Source: Mytilus californianus (Eukaryota). Taken from it: a stretch of DNA of 64,000 nt. Of the stretch, positions 5,101 to 63,425 are shown piece after piece. The position numbers were made by a program, and so were the translations under genes. The number at the start of each line of letters is the position of its first letter. Within the stretch, counting starts at the first letter, position 1. The notes beneath the pieces are model-generated. The model saw only the letters and a list, made by a program, of their open reading frames with translations. It was not told the DNA's origin and did no database searches. Location: positions 93,868,001 through 93,932,000 of the forward strand of contig NW_026262734.1 of assembly GCF_021869535.1 (NCBI RefSeq). Direction: 5' to 3'.

Positions 5101-7023
5101 ATAATAGGTGAATGTCCAATTTAAAATTGTTAAGTTCTTAGACCACATTCATTCTGTGTCAGAAACCTATGCTGTGTCAAATATTTAATCACAATCCAAA
5201 TTCAGAGCTGTATCAAGCTTGAATGTTGTGTCCATACTTGCCCCAACTGTTCAGGGTTCGACCTCTGCGGTCGTATCAAGCTGTGCCCTGCGGAGCATTT
5301 TATTAATGGAGCTATGGGACTTTGAACAATTTTGAGGTATCGAAAAATCCACACGTGGTAAATTCAACTTCTCTGACACCATTTGACTGAAAGCTGTCAT
5401 AATTGCAGGATTGTTGAAACTATTGCCTGTAATGTACCGCCATTTTAAGTGGAGTTCTGGGACTACACATTATTGTGAGCGCAACTCCTCATAGATCCTT
5501 TGACAGAAAACTCTTATTCTTGGAAGAAATGTTTGCGATCATGTGTATTTGATCATACATATTGTACTGTCATTATGACTCCCCCATTTTATGGCAGAAC
5601 AATGACTATTTTGTCGACTGTTGTTCAACAATTACACCATGTTTTGCCTTTGGAATAATAGGAGCATAAACATCAGCTCGAAATACACTTTATAATGTAA
5701 GCTATGTTTCTTGTCTACAATTCAACACTGTACGCACAATTCAATTCCATATTAGCACAACGCAAGATACATTTCAATCCGGTGCAGCAATCTTTATTAG
5801 TGACAATAGTGGAATTAATTATTTTTGGAGTGTAAAAAATTCTTTGTATGTTTTAGATAAATGACGTGCCTTTGATGGTCCTTTTGATTCTGTTGACAGT
5901 TTTGATATAACTCTAATGAGAATAATTACATATGTCAAGGTTTTTATCTCCGATGTTTCTCCTATACTCATGGTATCGAACGCATCACTACACTACACTT
6001 CCAAACAATCTTATCAAACAAAAGTTTTACTATTTAATTATTTGGTCGTTTGGTAAATCTGAATGCAAATATATTTGCTGCAACTCATTTAAAGCCTTCT
6101 TCTCTAATGAGAAAGGTAAATATGCTAGATATACTTACTGGAAGAGTGATGAGAGGATTGAAGCTGTTAATGTTCTCCTTGATAATATTTATGTACGTTT
6201 CGGCAATAAAGTTTATCGACAGATTGTAGGTATTCCTATGGGCACCAAATGCGCCCCTTTAATAGCAGACTTGTTCTTGTACTGTTATGAATAACTTTAT
6301 GGCCAAACTCAGTAAAGACCCGTCTAAATTGAATTTAATTGATAAATTCAACAACACTTATCGTTATCTTGATGATATTTTTCCTTAAATAATCAAGAAT
6401 TTTCTAAATATACTGCCGAAATTTACCCAAAGGAACTTACTTTAGATAAATCAAATATGAACGGTAATAACTGTCCTTTCCTAGATTTAGATATTTCAGT
6501 TTTACACGGGAAAATCTACACTAAAATATACGACAAAAGGGACGATTTTTTTGTTCCCTATTGTTAATTTTCCTTTTTTTGACGGTGATCGCTATGCCCG
6601 TGTCTGTTTTGGATTTCAATGAACGTAACCTTTGTATTACTGGTTAATTATTAAGTCGGGGATCTCGTTACCACAAATTACTTAAAACCTTTACTAAATT
6701 CTTCCATAGATATAAAGATTTGGTTTGGAAGTTTGGTTGTTCCTTATTTTTAACGGGATAGCACATCATAATTTTTACGGAGATGTTGTTTACCGAGCCC
6801 GGAAATTTAGATACGAACCGGATAAATTTATCGATCCTTTAAATAAACTTATTCAACACTATAATTAGATCTTCGAATATTGTTTTTATTGGTATTAATA
6901 TTAATTTTGTTATCAGTAAATTAAAATCAAACTAAATATTATTTTTATATACATATGCACATTCATGGCTCTACAATCTGTCGATACCTGTATATTGGCA
7001 TTGCACAAGGTCATGTTTTCTCT

Positions 7024-7090: not shown

Positions 7091-7326
7091 TTAAATGCAT
7101 GATTTTTTTATTAGCTGTTATTGGCTTTGAACTAGCTGTCAGTAACTGCGAGTACTCTCAGATCTGTACTTAGTGTCTTTTTGTTGTGGGGATGTATAAG
7201 TACCCTGCCACGTTCACTCTGTGTTTTTGTTAGATGTATTTCTGCTTTGTATCGATCTGATGAGTTAAGCCCTTTTCAACTGATTTTTATAGTTTGTTCT
7301 TTTGTTGTACTGTTACACCACTGTCC

Positions 7327-7410
7327 CAGGTTAAAGGGGGGGGTGGCATGCCTTCAAACTAGTTTAATCTCGCCACATTCTGTTTGTGCCTGTCCCAAGT
7401 CAGGAGCCTG
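7327..7410 (+). ncRNA. Degenerate P5-type twister ribozyme (family 2)
   Basis: P5 CAGGT/GCCTG, TAA, GC, P3 CACA/TGTG, P4 CCTG-TCCCAAGT-CAGG, A. The GAGGG segment is mutated to a G run and P2 is weakened. Confidence 0.65.
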
Positions 7411-9654
7411 TAATTCAGTAGTTGTCGTTTGTTGCTGTATATCATATTTGTTTTTCGTTCATTATTTTGTACATAAATCAGGTCGTTAATTTTCACGTTT
7501 GAATTGTTTTACATTTGTCATTTCGGGGCCTTTTATAGCTGACTATGCGGTATGGGTTTTACTCATTATTGAAGGCTGTACGGTGACCTATAGTTGTTAC
7601 TTTCTGTATCATTTCGTCTCTTGTGGAGAGTTGTCTCATTGGAAATCATACCACATCTTCTTATTTTTTTATATCGTCATATAGATGCACATCTGATATA
7701 GCAAAATTGACTCTGATTCATGTTATCAAGTTATATTTTTTGGCTGTTGTATTCAAAACATGTACGCTAGATTTTTATTTTGTATAACCGTCACTTCAAT
7801 AAAATGATACTATATTCGAGATAACTAATATATGCAGATGTTTGAAATAAGTAAAAAACAATGGAATTCAGATAGTCACTAATACACGAAAGAATATGAA
7901 GAATGGAGATATTTTTAACGTGACACAATTAGACCAGTTGCTCTCTCAAACGAGGAGTTATACATAAACTCATCATAGATACCAGGTTCAAAATTGTGTA
8001 CACCAGACACAAAACAATAGGTAAAGAATGTGTTTGCCTGTTAAGATCGAAGTGCTTTTACCCCTTTTAAAGGAACTTGATAGTTGTCTCCTTCAGATGA
8101 ATTTTCTTCCTGTTTTACCAGTGTCAATTTAGGGCTTAACATATAAAAGAGAAGGTGTATATATAAATATATTATGCCATTTAATTCTGCAATCAGATCG
8201 AATTAATAAAGCGATTATTATGATATCAGTAAATAAAGGCAACAGTAGTATACCGCTGTTCAATAGTCGTAAATCGATTAAGCGAAAACAAATCCGGGTA
8301 ACAACTAAAACCGAGGGAAACACATCAACTATAAGTGGAAAACAACGGAACAACAGAAAAACTGAACTGCAACAAAAACAAACGCCAACATAAATAGAAA
8401 CGGACTGCTTCACAAATTTGAACATGTTGAAATGAGTTTATTAAATCTATTGATGTTTCTTATGATTCAGGGAATCTTTTTCTCACATTTGAAATTTTAT
8501 GAGTTAATATTTATTTCCGAACACTTTGTGTGAATAATCCTTGGAAATTTTGCCACTTTCACAATTGTTAATGTTGACAGCAATCCATTACACATACAAT
8601 AGTCATTAGTCTGGTATACACAAACAACATCATTAAAGACGTAATTAATGTGCTAGAACAACAGTACCGGTATGGTACATTGCCGAAGGAGAAGAACTTT
8701 AATAACCAATGTGTGTGTCCGATATTGGATTACCATTGAGATAAGTGTAGTAGCGAGCACCATTGGTGTTCGACATTGCCGCAGATATCAGATATATTCC
8801 ACCAGTCTCACAAGTGAACTTCCCGGTACTTTTATACGCTGACAGATCATTGATGCCAATACTGAACTTAACGGCGTCAAATTTTATAATACCAGACTTG
8901 GTCGAGGAAGATACAAGATGTGAGTCATTGCCACTGAAATAAAACATTTTGATATAATGATGTGTTTTGTCGCCGTAAAATATTAGAAGAAAATAATATG
9001 TGTAATACGCGTGACATTGATGATATGTCTTGTATTACAGAAAACAATAATGACCCACCAGTGATAACTGACTTCGTTTTTCTCTTCATTTATACATATT
9101 TTTTATGAAAAGATTTTCAAGCAAGGTTATTTACATAATTATTATCAAGGTGACAGTATCTCAAAAGGGAAATCAATAACCAAAATGAAAAATTACGAAA
9201 AAAATCGACAATGCTCAAAGAACTAAACAGAAAACCGAACAATTGAGCAGCAAAAACTCAAATAAACACCCATACTGTGTGTTGAACTCTTCAGAAAAAC
9301 TCCATTTTTCACTAATGACACTCGTCGTATTTCTTTTTGAAAGAACAAATTATGTCTCATGTCGCATTCGGTGAATAAAATCATGAACAAAAGGACGGGT
9401 ATATGGCTTAGACAAGTAAAATGTACAACATTTGAATGTTTTACAAATATTTTATTTCAACCAAATCATGTGTCTGCTTGTTAAACAATATCAAGTGCAT
9501 TGTGTTGTTATGACGTATAGTCCTGATTTAATCATATATAATGGTGTTTGCTATGAATTCAAGACAGGATAGGTTAACTGTCAGTTGAAAAGGAAACAAG
9601 CGACATATAACAGTCAAAAGACGATATACGATATGAAGTTTGCGGTGCTGAAAA

Positions 9655-39878: not shown

Positions 39879-41060
39879 CCAGTGAAAAAATAAACACATC
39901 GTGTATAGTAAAACAAAATGTTGCTTGTTGTACAAACAGGAGGATAATAAATGATTTAACACGTATTCTAATAGTTGACACGAATAAACAATGTTTCACA
40001 GAAGATGTATATACATGTAAATATCAACATTTTGATACCGACAAACCGACAACCTCGCCAGTGCCGTAACTCATAAAATAAGGTGATGTGGTATGGTTGC
40101 CAACTAGAAAAGTACTTAAACAACTATAGGTCACCGTACGCCTTTAAATCGCAATCAAATCTCATACCGTAAAGTCCACTGTGAAAGGCGCCTACATGAC
40201 AAATTATAAAAAAAAATCAAACGGAAAACCAACGTCCCGATGTATGACAAAAAAATAAAAGAAAAACAAATATGACAGACACAAACCAACGACAAACACT
40301 GAATTACAGGCTCCCGACCTGGTACATGCACATATAGAATGGGCGTGGTCAAAAATGTTTGTGAGCGCTTAAACCTATAACCTTCAAAATTCATTTAGGA
40401 ACCGCTCAATACAATGATTAGAGAACACTTGCTAATTGTTGAAATCCGACCATACGGTGATATTGTTACATATTCACTGTAGGAGTGGGGTTTGTTATAT
40501 TCACTTTGTCTGTCCGTCCGTTCTTTCAGGAAATATTTTCATCTAGTTCACTTTTCTGAAGAATTACTAAATAGAATGACTTGATATACTTTATATTTAT
40601 TAGCCGCTTGACATATATGAGTTGTAACGTGTAAGCAGTTTCCGTATTTATCCGACAGTATTTTTAAAGAAGGATATAAATTCTCATGAAAATGTTTTCC
40701 CGACATTATCTGAGAAATGACAAAAACATACAAGCTATAATTTACGTCAAATGTGAGGGATATTTCTTTATGAAAGTGATCGGACATTGCTTGAATTTCG
40801 TAGTGCAAAAAACAAAAGAGTTTACAATTATACCATCGAGTGATAGAAAAAAACCCACTATAAAAATCTTTATTTTTTTATAATGTGACGTTCCCTATTT
40901 GTTGTATTCTAGCATTTGCTTCTTTAAAGAAGATAAAAACTTTATACATGTGTTATATGAATAAACAAAATATATTTTCTATAGAATAGTTTGAGTCGTA
41001 TCACGCACCCACAGAATACAATGTAGCTAGATTCTTCATTACAAATACATTATTTCACAG

Positions 41061-45843: not shown

Positions 45844-48766
45844 ATGAAAAGTAAGAAGAAGAGAGCCTTGAAATACATAGTTGCTGCTATTGCCGCTAAA
45901 AGACAAACAAAAAAGGTTAAGCGGAATTGGACAAAACCATGGTTGACAAGAAGAGCAGATCTGGGTGTTTGCCAAACTCTGCTTAAAGAATTGTCAAACG
46001 AAGACAGCGATTCTTTTCGCAACTTTCTGAGAGTCAGTCCGCAGCAATTTGCTTACCTTTTGGATATGGTAAAAGACAGTATCACAAAGAGCAGTACCAA
46101 TATGCGTACCTGTATCACAGCGGAGGAAAGATTATCACTAACATTGAGATACTTGGCAACAGGTACATTAATATCAGCCTCTTGTAGTCATTGTTAATTT
46201 TTTGTTGATTTTAAGCGTTAGAAGTTTGTTGAAAAAAGATAAACCAGTATTAAGTGGTGGTTAAATTCCATTATCCAGAAGTGTTATGCTTTAAAAAAAA
46301 ATGTTCTATACATTTTTAACTGTACTGAATTGGTGGTGTAGTTTCATGGCAAACGTATCAATCGAAATCATCGTATAAATTATACACTTGATGATCTCGT
46401 ATCTGTATTAAAAAAAAATGCATGCATCAATTATTAAGTAAACTCTCCAGAAGTGTTCGAATCATACGCTTGTACATAAAAGTAAATGTTATTGTCGAAG
46501 CTAGTAAATCAGACTATCATGCGTGTAATTTATTGTAGGTGAAAGTTATCGTAGTTTGAGTTATAGCTTTAGAATTGCACCTTCTACTGTATGCAGTATC
46601 ATCCCAGAAGTTTGTGATGCACTGTACCAAGCATTAAAAGATACATATCTGAAGGTATTAAATCACGTAATACTGCAATGTTTATTCATATCGGTTGAAA
46701 TTACTATATAAAATTTGACGAAAGAATGGTATCTTCATCAGATCATGGACGCAAAAAGAAAGAAATGCTCCACCGTACAGAACACATTATCATATGACAA
46801 ATCAACAAGAATATTTTGTTACCGTGATATGATTTAGAAACGTAATGTTAGAATACACGTTATTTGTACCAGTACTATGAGGATCAGTGGAGACTCCAAA
46901 CGCACAACTGTGCGCTGTAGCTATAGTACTTTCAAGGCAAATTTTGTTGTTGAAAAATATCTCATTTTATTACGATCCCTTGAGAATGCGTATTTTGTCA
47001 TACAGACTTAGAATTAAATATGGTCGTTATAAGGGTATTTCTAAAAAAAAACAAACATAGATGTCTCAGGTGCACCTCAAATGAAATTGGTAATGAAAAA
47101 CATTTTTTATTTACATGCACATCATCTTTTACTAGTAGAAACTGCATGTAGTCTTAGATTAATTCACTCTGTCCTAAATTGTAAGCACTTCATTCCTATC
47201 CAAAAAATGATCTGGCTACTTAAAGTAGAAAATGTTAATATATTATTATCTGTTTGTGATTTGATTGTTGAAGGCAAAACATAAATATGGCTTATCTGCA
47301 CTAGGCATGAAAATAGCATGGTGGTTACCTATAATAGACATAGTTTTGTGGATATTATCATAATATTTCAAACAAATTTTTATCTACATACATATACCTA
47401 TATATCCACATTGCCATGCAGCAATCTTGGAAGATTTTGCAGTTGAATTAAATATCCACTAAATTTTGTATGTTTGTGTGTGTGTGGGGGTTGGTGGGTG
47501 GGTGGGTGGGTGTGATTCATACATATTTAAACTGCTTTTTTATTTGTATACATACTTGATTTTTTTTTTAAATAATGTCGTATATTGTTATATTCTCTTT
47601 GTGAGCCCATGTAATAGAAATAAAACATCTTATATATATATATATATATACTATTTGGAAATTCAATATCCACACTCATATGCATATCAAGTCGAATCCA
47701 CAGGATGAGAACTGATATTTCATTCTGAACAAGATTCATCATCATCAGTAATTGCTGGTTTATTATAAAATGACTGGTCAGCTCTGAGTCAGAATAATGT
47801 GTCCTAGTGGAGTGACATGTCTAACTGCAGAAAGATATTCCAGTGTGGTAACACTTTTCAAATCAAACTAATCATGTTGATCAAGTACAATTTATCACAA
47901 TACATAAAATATGAACGCTCGCCTTACACCATAGTCTTGTTTTTGTCATGATATAGGTAAAAAATTATTTGATGTACACATTCTTTTCTTTATAAATGTA
48001 GGTACCATCGACACCAGAAGAATGGGAAGAAATTGCATCGGATTTTTATGAGAAATGGAATTATCCAAATTGTTTGGGGGCTATAGATGGGAAACATGTT
48101 GTCGTCCAAGCACCATGTAACAGTGGATCGTATTATTACAACTACAAACACACACACAGTATCGTTCTGATGGCTCTTGTTGATGCTAACTACCGCTTTA
48201 CCTACGTGGATGTAGGAAGTAATGGTCGTGTGAGTGACGGAGGAGTTTTTCGACAATGCACACTGCAAGAATCCATTGAAAATGAGTTGATAAATTTTCC
48301 GGGTCCTAAAGAATTACCTGGAAGACACAAAAAAGTTCCATTTGTTGTTGTTGGCGATGAAGCCTTTCCGCTGAAAGAATACCTGATGAAACCCTATCCT
48401 CAAAGGGGTGGATTGGATGATTCACAAAGGATTTTCAATTACAGACTTTCTCGGGCAAGAAGAATAGTTGAAAATGCCTTTGGCATTCTATGCAACAGGT
48501 TTCGTGTTTTAAGAGCCCCAATCCTTTCTTCACCCGACAAAGTAGAGAAAATAGTTTTGTGCTGTTGCGCTTTACATAACTTATTACGTCCAGAAACTCA
48601 GACTGTTAATGATGCAGAAAATGGACAGGATATTGGAACAGGGCTTCTGAAAGTTCCTCGTGGAGGAAGTCGTAACTCGTGTCAGGCGAGACAAATTCGC
48701 GATGAATTTAAAGAGTACTTTTTCACTACAGGCCAGGTTCCATGGCAGGCAAATGCTGTTAGATAG
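45844..48766 (+). CDS. Harbinger DDE transposase, 3 exons (45844-46162, 46539-46654, 48002-48766), about 399 aa
   Basis: GT-AG introns with matching phases (1, 0). Motifs FRNFLR, LRYLATG|ESYRSL, AIDGKH, VGDEAFPL and RRIVENAFGIL. No stops. Confidence 0.93.
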
Positions 48767-48992: not shown

Positions 48993-51900
48993 TTAAAGGT
49001 TGAGATACTGGTTTCCATCTATGTATTGAGTGTAGCATTGATTTTGGGATTGGGTATTATTCATTGGATACGATTGCATATCTCTTGGCACTTGTTGGGA
49101 TTGACTGCGAGGAACTTGCTGCTGAGAAGAACTTTGATATTGCTGGTTTAGGTTTAAAATTTGGGTTTCACACACCAAATTTTGAATTTTGTTCTTTAAA
49201 ATGAATTTGTTTACGTTTTCTGGCATGGCCGAGAGGGATGTTCCAACATATTTTCCGAAAATTGCATCATTGGAATCTTCTTCCTCTGGTGCATTCAGTG
49301 TGTCAATTGCTTTTTGTAAAAGCATATCAGATTTGTTGTCTTTAGACGTTTGTTTCCTCTTTTTAGCAGTTGTTGTGGAACTTGTGAAAGAATTTGCTGT
49401 TACAGAATTATGTGGCCAATCGTTTCCACTGTCATCTTCAATATCATCTCCTTCGTTATTTGAAGAATTCTGCCAAAAATAAAAAAAATAATTTTTATCA
49501 TGATTTCTTTTATAAGAAAACAAAAAGCACCTTCCTAATTAAAAAAAAACATACTCAGTCACATTCAACCATTAACATTCGATGAATTGATGCTTATTAC
49601 AACGGTAGGTTAAGTTCCGCTTATTAATTATTTGAAACTTATATTGAACTTTGGTTGCTTAACGTTCAGTGGGAAGTTACTTATAGGAAAATTACAAACC
49701 TTTGGAAAAGGGGGGGGGGGGGGGGGGTTGATACATATTGCTATGCATGCTTTTTTTTTTTTTTTTCTTCCGCACGGATATTTATTTTCACTTTTTTTTT
49801 TCTCAAATGGAGTGAGCTTCAAAATAATATAGTTTTTGTAATATCTTAATGAAAGGTGAATGACGAAAAAAAATCATAATTGTAGATATGCGAAGGATAT
49901 TTTTTTTCTATAATTGGCTCTTCGTTTTAAAATGCTAATTATATGCAATTATTCAGCTACACGATAGAATAAAGACTTATAGTTGATAAATTCTGTGTCA
50001 TTTGGTCTTTTGTGGAGAGTTGTCTCATTTGCAATTATATTTATACCACATCTTCTTATATCTATAACGTCACAGTACCCAAATTGCACCTATTCAACAA
50101 AAATAGCTGCGGAAATTTTACAAGTTTTCTTTGAAACTAAACCCCTTGTAATTTTATAATTTGACACTATACACGTCTTTCAACATAGGTAAACTTGTTT
50201 AGATATACACAAAACGTTCACAGTATAAACCAACAGATTAACCATACACCGAAAAAGTAAAATCTGCGGATACGTCGTCATGCGACGTTCACATAAAGTC
50301 ATCGTTTAAAAATGAGCAAATAAAATATGTTACAAGCATCTATTTCTAAAAAAAAATGAATATTAAGCATGGACTACATGTCAAATTGTTCTAAATATTT
50401 GAAGAAATAGAACAAAACATCTGTTATTCAATTTTTGGTAGAGTCGACACACTTTGTACATCTTCTATGATAGATATCCGTTGTATGATCTCATGAAAAA
50501 GATATTTATTTAAAAATGTTTTTGTTTAGCCAACTTGGCCTATTCCCGATTTCATATTCAACATACTTGTGTCATACACTGTAGTTGTGCAACACGGCTT
50601 TAATTATTTTTCAGATAGGTGTTTTTGGGGATCCGAAAAAGAATAAGATAAAGGGGTTGTACGGTTCGCAATTCGCAACTTCTGCATGATTTTGCTTTCA
50701 CAAGTCGTTTTTTCGACTTGTAGAACTCGTCTTTTTTCGATTTCCTGAGTCGTTTGTGTAAGTTTAGAAGTCAGGCTATTTATTTCGAACCACAATAGTA
50801 GTTTTATATTCAAATTCAAAGTCTAAACTATGACTTTGACTTTTTTTAATGTTTTTTTTTTATCGTTTTTCTGTTTCATTTTTTTTTTTGGGGGGGTGGG
50901 GGGGTGGGGGGGGTGGGGCTAATCTGCATTTGTACTTACAATATTTGATTTAGATACTCTTTTTCTGACTTGAGTTCTGAGAAATTTGTCCATACTCTGG
51001 TACATAGGCCATTTACTCTCATAGATTTCACATGTCCCAGCACCACTTCTCTTGGAATCTTCCACCTTATTCATTTCCCTCTTATAATAGGTTCTCAAAT
51101 TGTTGATTTTTTTATTGATCTTATCAACTGAAACAAAAAGACATCTTACCTATAACCGATATTAAAGCACAAACTTGATCGCCATAAGCTGTCGGATAAA
51201 TAATTGAGAATGACGCACTTTAATAGCAGATGACAATAAAAATAACATTAAGTTCCTTACTGCATATTTTTAAAATCAATTTGAACAGAAAAGCAATCGC
51301 ACTGTTTTCGAATATTTATATCATTACTTTGGGTTACTTTTATTTTAAACCGGGGGGACAACAAATATTCCTGAAAATTCTGCTTAATACAAAGGTCGAA
51401 AAGATTAAATGACAGTCTGTTGAAATAGCATTCATATGATGAAGACATAATCTTTCAATCAGTTTAATTGAAGTCTGGAGCTGGCATGTCAGTTAACTGC
51501 TAGTAGTCTGTTGTTATTTATGTATTATTGTCATTTTGTTTATTTTCTTTGGTTACATCTTCTGACATCAGACTCGGACTTCTCTTGAACTGAATTTTAA
51601 TGTGCGTATTGTTATGCGTTTACTTTTCTACATTGGCTAGAGGTATAGGGGGAGGGTTGAGATCTCATAAACATGTTTAACCCCGCCGCATTTTTGCGCC
51701 TGTCCCAAGTCAGGAGCCTCTAGCCTTTGCCAGTCTTGTATTATTTTTAATTTTAGTTTCTTGTGTACAATTTGGAGTTTAGTATGGCGTTCATTATCAC
51801 TGAACTAGTATATATATTTGTTTAGGGGCCAGCTGAAGGACGCCTCCGGGTGCGGGAATTTCTCGCTGCATTGAAGACCTGTTGGTGACCTTCTGCTGTT

Positions 51901-52968
51901 GTCTGTTCTATGGTCGGGTTGTTGTCTCTTTGACACATTCCCCATTTCCATTCTCAATTTTATATAGAAAGATTCTGTTTTAATTGAAAAAAATGAACAA
52001 TTAAAGTTCCCTTTAGGAACCTTACGTCACTATATTTTATACATTTATACGAGTTATCCCCCATTTTATGTAAAAAGAAAACATTGATGCAACATTAGAC
52101 ACTTTTTTTTTCTTCTTCTAAAAATGGAGTGATGCAAATGTTTAAACGTAAAGTTTTCAATATATTCATTACATACGATGCAGTCCGGTAAATCCGCCCA
52201 CATAAGGCTTTGACCGTATGTATTTCTGCTTAATTATATACAAATTGTAGCAAATTTAATATAAATCGATTTACTGACAAATCAACTTTGAGTATTTTAT
52301 CTCATTTCTCAAAAAATATCTGAAGTAAATTTTAAAATCAACAAAACAAGTGGGTCATCCGTGTTTTTATTGGAAATGTGTTTGTCCGGTAAATCCGCCC
52401 ATGGGCAGAAAATATGTATGGAGGGCCAGTTTATCACAATTTTATGAAAGGAAAGGTGATCTATTTATTAATAGACCACTTATAAAGAGATTCCAGATAA
52501 TCCAAAAAAAATTTCAAGTCAGAAATGAGTTTTGTAAGCAATAATATGATTATCGTTAGCTTAAGGAACTGTATTATATATATCACTAGATATTTTCGTA
52601 ATAAAGGATTTTTCTTTAAAATTTGACATGCAGTGATGATAAGTACAGTTACTATGTATGAAATAGCAGACGAAATATTCACGGAAGTGACAATTACGGA
52701 AGAAAAGAAATGGGAATGGGCGGGTTTACCGGACGGGCGGGATTACCGGACACTACTGTATATATATATATAAGCATTTACCTCCTATGTTTATTTTGCC
52801 ATCCATTCTCTCTAGGGCCCTTTTCCTCTCAATTTTATCATGATACGCTTGGGAAGTAACGTCCCATAGAGATGGCTCATTTTCATAGAGGTCGATGAAA
52901 TCCAAGTCTTCAGATACTTTCTGCTCTTCGTTATTGTCTAGTATTTCAACGGCTATCATGTCAGCCAT
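48993..52968 (-). CDS. Harbinger accessory MADF/Myb-like protein with BESS-like C-terminus, 3 exons (52968-52782, 51127-50940, 49469-48993), about 283 aa
   Basis: FIDLYENEPSLWD, KKINNLRTYYKRE..KRSGAG..YESKW..Y..MDKFL and FGKYVGTSL..MP...KNKIQNLV. Phases 1 and 0 are consistent. No stops. Confidence 0.9.
51430..51964 (+). mobile_element. 535-bp 3'-UTR-only copy of the family-1 Naiad, inside Harbinger
   Basis: Nearly identical reverse complement of 59998-60531. Confidence 0.93.
51635..51725 (+). ncRNA. P5-type twister ribozyme, best-preserved copy
   Basis: P5 GGCTAGAGG/CCTCTAGCC, P2 CCCC/GGGG, GAGGG (51652-56), T|AA (51678/51679), GC, P3 CGCA/TGCG, P4 CCTG-TCCCAAGT-CAGG, A. Confidence 0.85.
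52176..52758. mobile_element. TA-flanked MITE in MADF intron 1
   Basis: GTCCGGTAAATCCGCCC at ~52183 and ~52384, with inverted copies at 52717-52750. The right end reads cactactg|ta followed by (TA)n. Confidence 0.6.
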
Positions 52969-58985: not shown

Positions 58986-59067
58986 GTAAATGCTAAGATA
59001 AAAAAAAGCAAACATTCTGTGTCGTTATTGTCTATCTTGTATATAGGTCCATCTCTTAGATCTCCAT

Positions 59068-59997
59068 GGTAAAGACACTTGCATGTCTATTGTTTAAGAT
59101 AGTAGGTTTACCTTTAGAAGTCTTTGGTAAAGACACTTGTCTATTGTAAAAGATCGGAAATCGACCCTTTTCCATGATAAAGACACTTGCATGTTTAAGG
59201 TTTTAGACAGTGGGTTATCCTCAAAAGGATAAGGATTAAGACACTTGTCTGTTGTAAAAGACCGCAAGTCGACCTCTTCTCCAAGGTCAAGACAATTGCA
59301 TATCTATTGTTTAAGAAAATAGGTTTATCTCTAGATGTCCTTGGTTAAGACACTTTTGTTTGTAAAAAACCACAAGTCTAACTCTTCTCAAAAGTTAAGA
59401 CATCTGCATGTCCATTGTTTAAGATAGTATGTTTACATCTAGATGTCTTTGGTAAAGACACTTTTCTGTTGTAAAAGAGCGCAAGTCGACCTCTTCTCCA
59501 CGGTAAAGACACTTGCATGTCTATTGTTTACGATAGTAGGTTTACATCTTAGACTAGATGTCTTTTGTAAAGATACTTGTCTATTGTAAAAGACAGCAAG
59601 TCTACCTCTTCTCCACGGTAAAGACACTTGCATGTCTATTGTTTAAGATAGTAGGTTTACCTCTGGATCTCTTTGGAAAAGACACTTGTCTATTGTAAAA
59701 GACTGCAAGTTGACCTCTTCTCCACGGTAAAGACACTTACATGTCTATTGTTAAAGATAGTAGGTTTACCTCTGAATGTCTTTGGGAAAGACACTTGTCT
59801 TTTCTAAAAAAACACAAGTCTACCTCTTCTCCAAAGTTAAGACACCTGCATGTCTATTGTTTAAGATAGTAGGTTAACATCTAGATGTCTTTGGTAAAGA
59901 CACTTCTTTGTTGTAAAAGAGAGCAAGTCGACATATTCTCCATGATAAAGACACTTATAATATCTATTGTTTGAGATAGTAGGTTTACCACTTAGAC
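59068..59997. repeat. 109-bp tandem array, left part (~8.5 units, two sub-repeats each)
   Basis: GGTAAAGACACTTGCATG-type anchor at 59068, 59176, 59285, 59393, 59502, 59617, 59726, 59835 and 59944. Confidence 0.92.
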
Positions 59998-60236
59998 TAT
60001 AAAATTGAGAATGTAAATGGGGAATGTGTCAAAGAGACAACAACCCGACCATAGAACAGACAACAGCAGAAGGTCACCAACAGGTCTTCAATGCAGCGAG
60101 AAATTCCCGCACCCGGAGGCGTCCTTCAGCTGGCCCCTAAACAAATATATATACTAGTTCAGTGATAATGAACGCCATACTAAACTCCAAATTGTACACA
60201 AGAAACTAAAATTAAAAATAATACAAGACTGACAAC

Positions 60237-60326
60237 GGCTACAGGCTCCTGACTTGGGACAGGCGCAAAAATGCGGCGGGGTTAAACATGTTTATGAGAT
60301 CTCAACCCTCCCCTATACCTCTAGCC
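60237..60326 (-). ncRNA. P5-type twister ribozyme in the Naiad 3' UTR
   Basis: Minus strand: GGCTAGAGGT-ATA-GGG-GA-GGG...T|AA-CCCC-GC-CGCA TTTT TGCG-CCTG TCCCAAGT CAGG-A-GCCTGTAGCC. Predicted cut between 60284 and 60283. Confidence 0.82.
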
Positions 60327-60509
60327 AATGTAGAAAAGTAAACGCATAACAATACGCACATTAAAATTCAGTTCAAGAGAAGTCCGAGTCTGATGTCAGA
60401 AGATGTAAACAAAGAAAATAATCAAAATGACAATAATATATAAATAACAACAGACTACTAGCAGTTAACTGACATGCCAGCTCCAGACTTCAATTAAACT
60501 GATTGAAAG

Positions 60510-60600
60510 ATTATGTCTTCATCATATGAATATCAGGCACAATCCTTCCCGTTAGGGGTTTAGTATCATACCATCATAACATATATGAGAAGAACATAAC
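60510..60600 (-). promoter_or_regulatory. Canonical type II SECIS element (core 60577-60532)
   Basis: ATGA-T, helix II GGTATGATACT/AGGATTGTGCC (10 of 11 pairs), AAA, mini-stem CCC/GGG, TGAT quartet and extended helix I. Begins 62 nt after the ORF stop. Confidence 0.85.
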
Positions 60601-60638
60601 CCGTGTCATGCCAACAACTGGTTTTTAAATAAATGTGT

Positions 60639-62309
60639 TTAGTGCCGATGCAAAGACCCTATAAGTGAATCAATATTAACGCCAAAATATGCAATCTTTA
60701 ATGACCTGACAACAGTATCGTAACTATATCCCTTCTTAATAAGTCTATTTAAAGGTTTTGTTAGCTTCAGAGGTGAATACTGACATTTTTGTGCTTTATA
60801 AAGAATATTTCCATAAAAAATTGGATGTGAAATACCTGAACGTATAAGAAGTCTGCATGTTGAGCTATACTTACGAATGATGTCCTTATACCGATGATAA
60901 AATTTAGTAAATGTTTTGACTAGTTTGTGATATCGAAAACCCTGGTGTAATAATTTTTCAGTAATACATAAATTTCTCTCGTTAAAATCTAAAACATTGT
61001 TACATACACGAGCGAATCGTACAAGTTGAGATATATAAACACCGTAAGATGGTGACAAGGGAACGTCACCATCTAAAAATGGATAATTAACGATAGGAAA
61101 TGAAAAATCATCTCTTTTATCATATATTTTAGTATTAAGCTTTCCGTTAATGATATAGATATCAAGATCGAGGAAAGGGCAGTGGTCATTGTTAGTATTA
61201 GCTTTATTTAAAGTAAGTTCAACAGGATAAATTTCTTTAGTATACATACTGAAGTCGTCATTATTGAGAGCCAAAATATCATCCAAATATCTAAAAGTAT
61301 TATTAAATTTGTGTATCAGATGTTGTTTCGATGGGTCTTTGCTGATTTTTGTCATAAATTGTAACTCATAGCCATACAAAAAAAGGTCCGCAATAAGTGG
61401 TGCACAGTTAGTCCCCATTGGAATTCCGATAACCTGACGATATACGGAATCTCCAAAGCGAACAAAAATGTTATCTTGTAAAAATTCAAGGGCATATATA
61501 GTATCAAAGCATGTCCAATTGACATAGTTTTTTTGTTTATTGCTACTAAAAAATGACCTTAAAGAGTTTGAACATATATATTCACATTCTGACTTTTTAA
61601 ATGCCCATTTAATTAGGTGTGTGAATTTTTTCTTAATGAGAATGTGAGGCAATGTGGTATATAGGGTAGAAAAATCAAAACTTTGAACAGATTCAAAATC
61701 ACCAATATATGCATGCAATTTATCAAGTACTTCCAACGAGTTCTTGACACTCCAAAAGTAATTAATTCCACTATTTTCGAAGGCCTTATTTGAACAATTT
61801 ATTATCAGGTTTTTGATTGTACCAAGTGTACTGGTAAAAAGAATAGACAATTTAGTAGTGGAACAATGGCTTGAAGACGAAATGAATCTATATTTGTAAG
61901 GTGTTTTGTGTAGCTTCGGAAGCCAATACATAGTTGGGACTTTCATTGTATTTGGTTCTGCTTGTAAAGCGGTAGCTAAAAGTTTATGTTTGTTACAGAT
62001 GTCGTTTTCTGAAAATGGAGTCAGTTGGAATGTTGGTGAATTGGTGATTTCTTTTTTCAGAACCTTAATGTAAAATTTACGTCAAACAATAATAATATTA
62101 TTAGCAGCTTTATCGGCCGGGACAAAAACAAATTCCTTGGCTAGTTCTTTTAGTTTATGTTTGATACGAGAAATAGGTTTATTGTGGTTATTGTTAAGAG
62201 TAAAATGTTCTTTAAAATGTTGAATACGTATATCAACTATGTTCATTACTGATTTAAAAAAAGAGTCCAAAGATTTTTTGTCAGCTTTTTCCCGTTTTAT
62301 CCATTTCAA
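60639..62309 (-). CDS. Naiad RT reading frame with one in-frame TGA (62084-62082, candidate selenocysteine); upstream part disrupted
   Basis: ORF 62309-62082, a stop-free 45-codon bridge and ORF 61946-60639 share one frame. Upstream there is a frameshift near 62340 and a TGA at 62378-80. Confidence 0.75.
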
Positions 62310-62975
62310 ACAGTAAGTATGGAGTGAGTCGTGGATGACTCATTCCAATTAATAATTGACGGGGGACGATATTTAGGTCATTTACTGAGGAATGATTTTA
62401 ACTCTCGGTCTTGAACGATGTTAAGATCTCCTGTTATAACATGGGAAATGGGTCCATAAATGTATTCGGAATTAATGCAATTACATGAAGTAGGTGTATT
62501 TTCACTGATATTAACATCTTTACACAATTGGCTATAATTAAACACAAATTTCCGGGTAGATTTCTTGTAAATATAACAAATAAGAGGGAGCTCAGTATTA
62601 TCAAAATATCCCGAAATTTGTTCTTTAACAGAATGGTCGTTAAAAATACCGGCAATATTTACAAAATCAAAACCTTTATTGACATACTTTATTTTAATTA
62701 ACTGTTTTTTATGATCTTCAGGGCGATCAATTTTGGGAAACAGTTTAGAATAACAATATGCCATCATAATTTGAACGATTTCATACTTAGGACTGCTATA
62801 TGAAATTGTGTTGCAATCCTCTAAAATTTTATTTAACTTATTAACCGGTAATGAACAGAGCTTTGTTAACAGATAATGTCTGCCGTTGTTTTTTGAAATA
62901 GAAATTAGGTCCGAAATATTGGTATGATTGGTCCGAAATTTTCTTTGATTGCGATTTTTTCTACGACCATGAAAT

Positions 62976-63425
62976 ATGTTTTTGGTAAAGACACTTGTCT
63001 ATTGTAAAAGACTGTAAGTTGACCTCTTGTCCACGGTAAAGACACTTGCAAGTCTATTGTTTAAGATAGTAGATTTACCTCTGAGACTAGATGCCTTTGG
63101 TAAAGACACTTGTTTAATGTAAAAGACCGCAAGTCGGTCTCTTTTCCTTGGTAGAGACACTTGCATGTCTATTGTTTCAGATAGTAGGTTTACCTCTGGA
63201 TGTCTTTGGAAAAGACACTTGTCTGTTGTAAAAAACGCAAGTCTACCTCTTCTCCAATGTTGAGACACTTGCATGTCTATCGGTCAAGAAAGTAGGTTTA
63301 CCTCTAGATGTCTTTGTCTATTGTAAAAGACTGCAAGTCGACCTCTTCTCCACGGTAGAGATACTTCCATGTCTATTGTTTAAGACAGTGGGTTTTTCCT
63401 CCAGATGACTATGGTTAAGACACTT
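62976..63425. repeat. 109-bp tandem array, right part (~4 units)
   Basis: Same unit as 59068-59997. Confidence 0.9.

Follow-up and report, generated by a model that had tools for sequence, protein, structure and literature searches.

Positions 60326–60237 of the 64,000-nucleotide stretch of Mytilus californianus DNA analysed here (the window) had been read from their letters as a type-P5 twister ribozyme in the 3′ UTR of a Penelope-like element (PLE). The locus raises three questions: what element carries the motif, whether its RNA is likely to be a self-cleaving twister, and how such an RNA might work with no canonical helix P1. PLEs are the retroelements closest to telomerase.

The host element and its 3′ region

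Judged by published diagnostic motifs, the element that carries the motif is a selenoprotein-coding Naiad PLE. Its main features, together with a second fragment in the window, are as follows.

59999–62972, minus strand: Naiad PLE copy, 2985 bp, 5′-truncated, of a 4020-bp element, inserted in a 109-bp satellite
60639–61946, minus strand: RT part of the Naiad ORF, 435 aa from the ATG, past the last in-frame UGA, with an RYLDD motif
60523–60587, minus strand: SECIS between the stop codon and the twister (SECIS_1, 31.7 bits, below the gathering threshold of 35; E 1e-4)
51430–51963, plus strand: 534-bp 5′-truncated 3′ fragment of the element, carrying an intact copy of the motif

The diagnostic features of clam selenoprotein Naiads are an N-terminal GIY-YIG, the CxC and DKA motifs, the positions of the UGA codons and a 3′ SECIS (Craig et al. 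2021, PMC8557442). The Naiad frame here runs over ~1,029 codons and contains four in-frame stop codons, each a TGA; one is 8 residues past DKA and two flank the GIY motif. In PMC8557442 the clam Naiads have UGA codons at these sites, ahead of the GIY motif and eight residues past DKA. GIY-YIG motifs (IIYLLT-UGA-...YVGETGR...EH...N) are readable in frame upstream of CxC; the CxC linker (TSCNCSNSEY...HVITGDL), the DKA variant of the DKG motif (PADKAANN) and the RT motifs GIPMGTNCAPL and RYLDD are likewise readable in translation, and 4,304 RT homologues were found. SECIS_1 matches score 39.0 and 37.4 bits in the relatives L109 and L110. The Naiad identity rests on these published motifs because the protein-family and PDB searches gave nothing significant for either domain: the RT has no significant match in Pfam RVT_1, NCBIfam or PDB, by sequence or by profile, and Pfam GIY-YIG has no match in the family A protein and matches weakly only in the L110 ORF (E 0.013, 16.2 bits, below cut-off).

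The insertion splits the 109-bp satellite array (window 59021–60001 and 62976–63395), so that its boundaries are precise. The repeating unit is 4020 bp in an intact tandem (L043), and several of the best RT matches are spaced at 4020 bp; searching the genome (1.65 Gb) for the RT returned 91,770 candidates, the best 97 of which are 98–99% identical. Tandems, 5′-truncated copies and AT-rich flanks are equally a property of the clam selenoprotein Naiads (Craig et al. 2021, PMC8557442). The flagged motif is situated 312 nt past the stop of the RT-like ORF and ~240 nt short of the sharp element end, and it lies ~310 nt past the stop codon in 11 of 12 RT copies. Its assignment to the 3′ UTR of a PLE is therefore borne out, the more precise address being the 3′ UTR or pseudo-LTR of a Naiad. 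Elsewhere in the window, an ORF at 48074–48766 (plus strand) has a strong DDE_Tnp_4 (Harbinger/PIF-type) transposase domain (E 7.5e-39).

Canonical hammerheads are reportedly absent from Naiads, and the word 'twister' is absent from the paper describing them (Craig et al. 2021, PMC8557442); the study sought hammerheads only, whereas here a twister fold is located downstream of the SECIS. In agreement with this and with the sequence-only reading, no hammerhead family reached its gathering threshold, either in the window or across ten element loci.

The genome contains at least two Naiad families with RTs 42–67% identical. The flagged motif belongs to family A (P5 GGCUAGAGGU/GCCUCUAGCC, P3 CGCA/UGCG), and family B has a two-part P5 (CAGGU/GCCUG plus CCACUG/CAGUGG) and a different P3 (CACAU/AUGUG). 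In the window, the family-B motif at 7308–7427 is ~385 nt past a decayed RT (5802–6923) and ~245 nt ahead of the element 3′ end (7672). A hammerhead half-core, CUGAUGAG, is found at 7257–7264 (plus strand), ~50 nt upstream of this family-B twister; it is conserved in the family-B 3′ UTR and is present in the left flanks of two short tandem arrays described below (L127 and L128). No full hammerhead was detected around the half-core of the family-B 3′ UTR, and 'HHR half cores' in Naiad 3′ UTRs are mentioned by Craig et al. (PMC8557442).

Organization and conservation of the twister-fold motif

The segments of the motif, assigned by reading the sequence, and its further copies in the window are listed below. 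The slash in U/AA marks the predicted cut, and scores are from a covariance model (R1) built from copies in this genome only.

60237–60326, minus strand: twister-fold motif, slightly worn (116.2 bits, E 2.8e-32)
60326–60317, minus strand: P5 5′ strand GGCUAGAGGU, followed by AUA
60313–60311, minus strand: P2′, GGG
60310–60306, minus strand: GAGGG
60305–60285, minus strand: 21-nt stretch without P1, between GAGGG and U/AA
60295–60304, minus strand: palindrome 1, UGAGAUCUCA, 2 bases past GAGGG, at the site of the P1 3′ strand
60284–60293, minus strand: palindrome 2, AAACAUGUUU, with the scissile U as its last base, at the site of the P1 5′ strand
60283–60284, minus strand: predicted scissile bond U60284/A60283, with U/AA abutting P2-GCC on its 5′ side, in keeping with the Rfam twister consensus line
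60281–60278, minus strand: P2, CCCC, followed by GCC
60275–60264, minus strand: P3, CGCA/UGCG, a small hairpin
60263–60248, minus strand: P4, CCUG/CAGG, closing the loop UCCCAAGU
60247, minus strand: A after P4
60246–60237, minus strand: P5 3′ strand GCCUGUAGCC, pairing with GGCUAGAGGU with one mismatch
51635–51725, plus strand: intact copy of the motif with a 4-bp P2 and a perfect 10-bp P5 (124.7 bits)
51678/51679, plus strand: predicted cut of the intact copy, between these two positions of the same motif
7308–7427, plus strand: second-family (family B) motif with other P5 and P3 (112.3 bits)
40290–40403, minus strand: degenerate second-family copy (56.9 bits)

All twister parts except a canonical P1 are present in type-P5 order at 60326–60237 on the minus strand, as had been proposed, and again in a better-preserved inverted twin that is 99% identical to it (51635–51725, plus strand). 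The conserved core (U/AA, GCC after P2, the loop UCCCAAGY and GAGGG) is complete in both, and its letters match the capitals of the Rfam twister consensus line (UAA / GCC / GUCCCAAG / GAGGG). The U/AA next to P2-GCC places the predicted cut at 60284/60283, the same U/A step that had been named before. The proposed P2 (CCCC/GGG) and P5 are present as well, but this copy is worn: its P2′ is one G short of the family norm, leaving a P2 of 3 bp, and its P5 has one mismatch. GGGG-GAGGG and a perfect 10-bp P5 are found in the 51635–51725 copy and in 10 of 11 other family copies checked.

The order of parts is that of twister type P5 (Roth et al. 2014; RF02684, clan CL00120), namely P5-P2′-GAGGG-(P1 region)-U/AA-P2-GCC-P3-P4-A-P5, and the chain ends open in the P5 helix between P4 and P2′, which is the arrangement of the type-P5 permutation. 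Both have the P4 loop UCCCAAGY, the conserved core bases and the pseudoknots T1 and T2. The Naiad motif differs in having no P1 hairpin and in its place 21–24 nt with two palindromes, in its long P5 (10–16 bp), and in the last loop base, a U, which gives a G·U pair in T2; it also scores far below the Rfam thresholds, and its self-cleavage is a prediction.

A search with the Rfam twister models had been suggested as a check and was negative. None of the models reached its gathering threshold in the window or the element loci; Twister-P5 (RF02684) has no match in the window or the whole genome, and twister-P1 gives partial matches only, at 13.3, 17.6 and 20.2 bits against a gathering threshold of 67.2, in permissive runs on the window, the intact copy of the family, family B and one foreign lineage. 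This failure is understandable, given that P1 is absent, a P3 is inserted and P5 is long.

The motif is abundant in the genome. A core pattern (GAGGG-N5-35-TAA-N4-GC-N8-30-TCCCAAG) has 18,228 matches versus 16 for a reversed control; these matches are members of repeats and not independent events, and weight is therefore placed on the comparison between lineages. A DNA search with the 101-nt motif gave 37 matches, a severe undercount in which very common words were skipped, and the pattern search was used instead. In a plain MAFFT alignment of 73 copies, a P5 pair is CG in 30 and GC in 27, and a P3 pair is AU in 35 and GC in 31.

For the comparison between lineages, contigs encoding RT homologues (38–76% identity) were taken from six other assemblies. 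In five of these six, model R1, although built from own-genome copies only, picks out the motif on the sense strand and downstream of the Naiad RT ORF (E ~1e-24 to 9e-5), at loci L107, L108, L109, L110, L112, L113, L115, L122 and L124. At L111 there is an apparent decayed copy (U/GA) of the L122-type motif that R1 does not score, and L114 was left out because its downstream sequence is too short. The sixth assembly has only a more distant element, which lacks the motif. At L123 (RT 38% identical and possibly not a Naiad) no motif is found downstream of the ORF. A weak twister-model match (24.9 bits) is present at L123 1317–1451 (minus strand), antisense to and upstream of the distant RT ORF, which has a faint RVT_1 match; since no motif follows the L123 ORF, this match is probably part of an adjacent element. 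At loci L110 and L122, copies of the motif occur both upstream and downstream of the ORF, which indicates a pseudo-LTR location, where canonical PLEs have their hammerhead.

All of the sampled lineages look bivalve-like and share ancestry, so that few independent events are represented. The claim that this clade uses twister stands, as regards the fold, for a handful of bivalve-like lineages and does not extend to Naiads as a whole. Two Naiad RT homologues (P0185 and P0202) are also present in public records under Candidatus Thiodiazotropha MAGs (lucinid clam symbionts), most likely as host clam DNA binned with the symbiont.

Between lineages the motif is the sole blastn-alignable island in the 641-nt 3′ UTR, and it is kept where the RTs are only ~50% identical. 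Covariation, whose absence across genomic copies the sequence-only reading had named as a refutation, was found across copies and lineages. In alignment A2, 94.3% of the cells are paired, compared with 76.8% when shuffled and 27–49% with slid partners, and double changes occur in 17 of 26 pairs; the corresponding values for alignment A5 are 93.4%, 78.4% and 28–47%, with double changes in 16 of 26 pairs. The nested P2–P5 parts of both alignments were fitted to the model structure and their pair counts are biased accordingly, a bias from which T1, T2 and palindrome 2 are exempt. T1 and T2 lie outside the model structure and nevertheless covary, in A2 and likewise in A5. In T1 (GAGGG paired to CCC in the P4 loop), pair 34–107 is GC in 12, UA in 2 and AU in 1 (A2), with examples such as GAUGG opposite the loop UCCAAAGU and GAAGG opposite the loop UCCUAAGU. 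In T2, formed by the GC that follows P2 and the final two bases of the loop, pair 66–111 is GU in 10, CG in 2, AU in 1 and UG in 1 (A2). Both pseudoknots that had been proposed (CCC/GGG and GC/GU) are supported in this way.

The helices behave similarly. P2 takes the forms CCCC/GGGG, GCCC/GGGU, GCCC/GGGC and CCAC/GUGG, with 98% of the cells pairing and double changes in 2 pairs, and P4 the forms CCUG/CAGG, AUCG/CGAU and ACCG/CGGU, with 92% of the cells pairing and double changes in 3 pairs (both A2). P5 and P3 stay paired with wholly different sequences between lineages; P5 has five unrelated sequences of 10–16 bp (10 bp in family A, 5+6 bp in family B, 15 bp in L109, 16 bp in L112 and 8+4 bp in L122), with double changes in all four modelled P5 pairs (A2 and A5). 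The G and A of GAGGG, the AA past the cut and the AAG of the loop, all unpaired, are invariant across lineages, and the core letters vary solely at T1 and T2 positions, in step with their partners.

The comparison shows that the sense RNA can form P2, P3, P4, P5, T1 and T2, with the pairings kept by compensatory substitutions, and a twister-fold RNA is well supported by these alignments. A chance look-alike or a decayed relic, riding without function on a successful repeat, is very improbable: high copy number is by itself uninformative and many individual copies carry core mutations, as a relic would, but this reading is contradicted by the compensatory double changes in 16–17 of 26 pairs and by the survival of the motif where RTs are ~50% identical and the rest of the 3′ UTR is unalignable. 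Because paired positions covary while catalytic positions are frozen, the pattern is the signature of a functional ribozyme more than of generic structure, and this combination of covarying pairs with frozen, unpaired active-site bases is the main reason for favouring catalysis. The motif is in our estimate quite likely to be a genuine self-cleaving twister variant, P5-permuted and a fixed part of the Naiad 3′ UTR or pseudo-LTR.

Palindromes at the sites of the P1 strands

The 21 nt between GAGGG and U/AA cannot form P1. In every lineage this stretch (21–24 nt) contains two palindromes between GAGGG and the scissile U, at the exact sites of the two P1 strands, and they stay self-complementary while their letters change between lineages. 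At least ten different self-complementary sequences are found for palindrome 1 (UGAGAUCUCA, UGAGCGCUCA, GGGAUCCC, GGGCGCCC, UGGCGCCA, GGCGCC, GGGCCC, AGGUACCU, AUGGCCAU, UGGUACCA and GGCAUGCC) and four for palindrome 2 (AAACAUGUUU, AAACUAGUUU, AAACCGGUUU and AAAUGCAUUU), in which the central pair is AU, CG, UA or GC (A2 and A5). The evidence is the list of distinct forms and not their shares, and palindrome 1, which has no fixed centre across lineages, is not countable by alignment column. The central four palindrome bases are self-complementary in every lineage, and several palindromes are too short for hairpins.

Intermolecular pairing is the simplest reading of these palindromes, since they are short and a loop has no need of a self-complementary centre. 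The presence of two palindromes in place of P1 suggests that the RNA works as a dimer. With RNAcofold the dimer is at −83.2 kcal/mol versus 2 × −37.8 kcal/mol for the monomers, values that show the energetic accessibility of a dimer only; minimum free energy folding ignores pseudoknots, favours an alternative P2-like pairing and is uninformative on the twister fold.

In the proposed mechanism, each palindrome would pair with the matching palindrome of a partner RNA, such that the two molecules supply partner strands for both halves of each other's missing P1 and the active form is a dimer. The RNA would then cut itself at the U/A step (60284/60283), leaving a 2′,3′-cyclic phosphate and a 5′-OH. 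Cuts in successive tandem or pseudo-LTR copies would release unit-length RNA, which might circularise, and isolated copies in host transcripts would stay mostly uncut given the dependence on a dimer. As a type, the motif is probably a new, dimer-type twister variant; in the dimer mechanism specifically our confidence falls somewhat short of even.

A monomeric twister that lacks P1 and cuts in cis, with palindromes unrelated to catalysis (for example small hairpins or DNA-level sites), is an alternative. P1 has been reported dispensable for twister cleavage (PMC6154101), although cleavage without it is described as inefficient (PMC8501958), and palindrome 1 of the main family could make a 3-bp hairpin with a GAUC loop. 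Against it, the short palindromes such as GGCGCC and GGGCCC cannot form hairpins, the central four bases stay self-complementary in every lineage, and both palindromes lie exactly at the P1 strand sites. We consider this explanation unlikely, and the RNA reads bear on it further.

RNA reads, known ribozymes and implications

Raw reads from four RNA-seq runs of this species were mapped to a tandem junction of the intact element (L043:5700–7800). At the predicted cut (L043 7038/7037), no site with at least one-fifth of the molecules starting or ending was found in the four runs (depth 450–1,070), and the RNA ends that had been anticipated there did not appear. No informative joints were present at L043:5700–7800. 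The two read orientations are about equal, and most reads run past the element 3′ end into diverse AT-rich flanks; on both counts the reads come mostly from thousands of truncated copies in other transcripts. Efficient cleavage of bulk sense transcripts is excluded by these data. An efficient cis-acting monomer should cut thousands of sense copies in host transcripts, and such ends are absent; a concentration-dependent dimer and an inactive RNA fit the missing pile-up equally well. At the element 3′ end (L043 6751), ~200–300 reads per run (X21–X23) enter one specific sequence with an agreement of 0.74–0.79, in contrast to the diverse AT-rich flanks entered by the others; this might reflect either a single strongly expressed insertion or a favoured junction.

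It is also conceivable, though rather unlikely, that the motif is a structured, non-cleaving RNA module, perhaps derived from twister, that serves another step of the Naiad cycle. Such a module could perhaps be recognised by the RT in the 3′ region for target-primed reverse transcription, or perhaps mediate dimerisation of the template RNA, as does the retroviral dimer-initiation site, and so promote tandem or inverted PLE insertions. Covariation proves the fold and not catalysis, the Rfam models reject the motif, the palindromes fit a dimerisation role, and there is no read-end pile-up at the predicted cut in the four runs. In addition, the element 3′ end ~240 nt beyond the motif is retained in all 5′-truncated copies, and since integrated copies end there, the RNA that was reverse transcribed was uncut at the downstream motif. 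Set against this, the invariant bases (the G and A of GAGGG, U/AA and the AAG of the loop) are exactly the catalytic and active-site bases of twister, of which a mere scaffold has no need, and a proven self-cleaving ribozyme occupies the same place in canonical PLEs.

Minimal type-I hammerheads are reportedly present in the pseudo-LTRs of canonical PLEs (Cervera and de la Pena 2014; Lunse, Weinberg and Breaker 2016/17), and the release of unit-length RNA from tandems is said to be the role proposed for them. To judge from the title of Lunse et al., as cited in PMC6765202, PLE hammerheads cleave as dimers. They share with the Naiad motif the host class and the site, a terminal repeat downstream of the ORF, and their shortened helix makes them poor as monomers and active as dimers, which is the working mode proposed here. 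They differ in being an unrelated fold of another ribozyme class, with dimer activity demonstrated for them and deduced for the Naiad motif. It is a tentative proposition that Naiads replaced the dimer-dependent PLE hammerhead by a twister rebuilt for dimerisation through palindromic P1 strands.

Twister ribozymes are already known, as are twisters in retrotransposons of the RTE group. The T-variants of Perere-3 and other RTE elements (PMC8501958; PMC7761336) likewise have a relaxed or missing P1 and are integral to the retrotransposon transcript, with a proposed role in RNA end processing, and Perere-3 variants with a degenerate P1 are active (PMC8501958). These are type-P1 twisters at the 5′ end of non-LTR elements and derive P1 partly from the target-site duplication, whereas the Naiad motif is P5-permuted, lies in a PLE 3′ UTR or pseudo-LTR and has palindromes for P1. 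Reviews of retrotransposon twisters name only RTE/Perere-3. The literature search returned no paper with both 'twister' and 'Naiad' (subscription-only papers being outside its scope), which matches the earlier statement that no report for this clade was known, and it found no report of a twister in a PLE or of a natural twister with palindromes for P1.

The genome also contains dispersed tandem arrays of 2–4 units of ~178 nt, each unit with a family-B twister (R1 110–127 bits). Four of these were placed as follows.

L125 1654–1981 (genome region C1:5254800–5258400): 178-nt array
L126 846–1558 (genome region C106:902300–905000): 178-nt array
L127 about 777–1248 (genome region C1:42460800–42463000): 178-nt array
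L128 about 793–1269 (genome region C79:6700600–6702700): 178-nt array

A query of two array units matches over its full length at 40 or more places, spread over many contigs (8,003 candidates). In layout the arrays resemble the hammerhead 'non-LTR retrozymes' of metazoans, except that a twister stands where those have a hammerhead, and are known here from DNA; short non-autonomous tandem arrays of this kind (retrozymes) are likewise related to PLE hammerheads, and the hammerhead 'non-LTR retrozymes' have been tied to PLEs by a 2026 preprint (10.64898/2026.07.22.740005). If the tentative replacement of the hammerhead by a dimeric twister is correct, the 178-nt arrays would be the first 'retrozymes' built on twister, with the capacity to yield small circular RNAs.

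For annotation, it follows that the twister-fold motifs of Naiads are missed entirely by the Rfam models. The motif would offer a natural, P1-less and probably dimeric twister for mechanistic work, and would be the first natural dimeric twister if the dimer reading is true. For the biology of PLEs, it would give a handle on how their RNAs are processed. Naiads, the apparent exception among PLEs, have no canonical hammerheads yet out-proliferate others, from which it was argued that the ribozyme is maybe dispensable or merely parasitic (PMC8557442); with a twister conserved at the same place this argument would be reversed, and some self-cleaving RNA would appear to be needed. If the dimer reading is also true, what the PLE life cycle needs would be concentration-gated self-cleavage as such, whatever the ribozyme.
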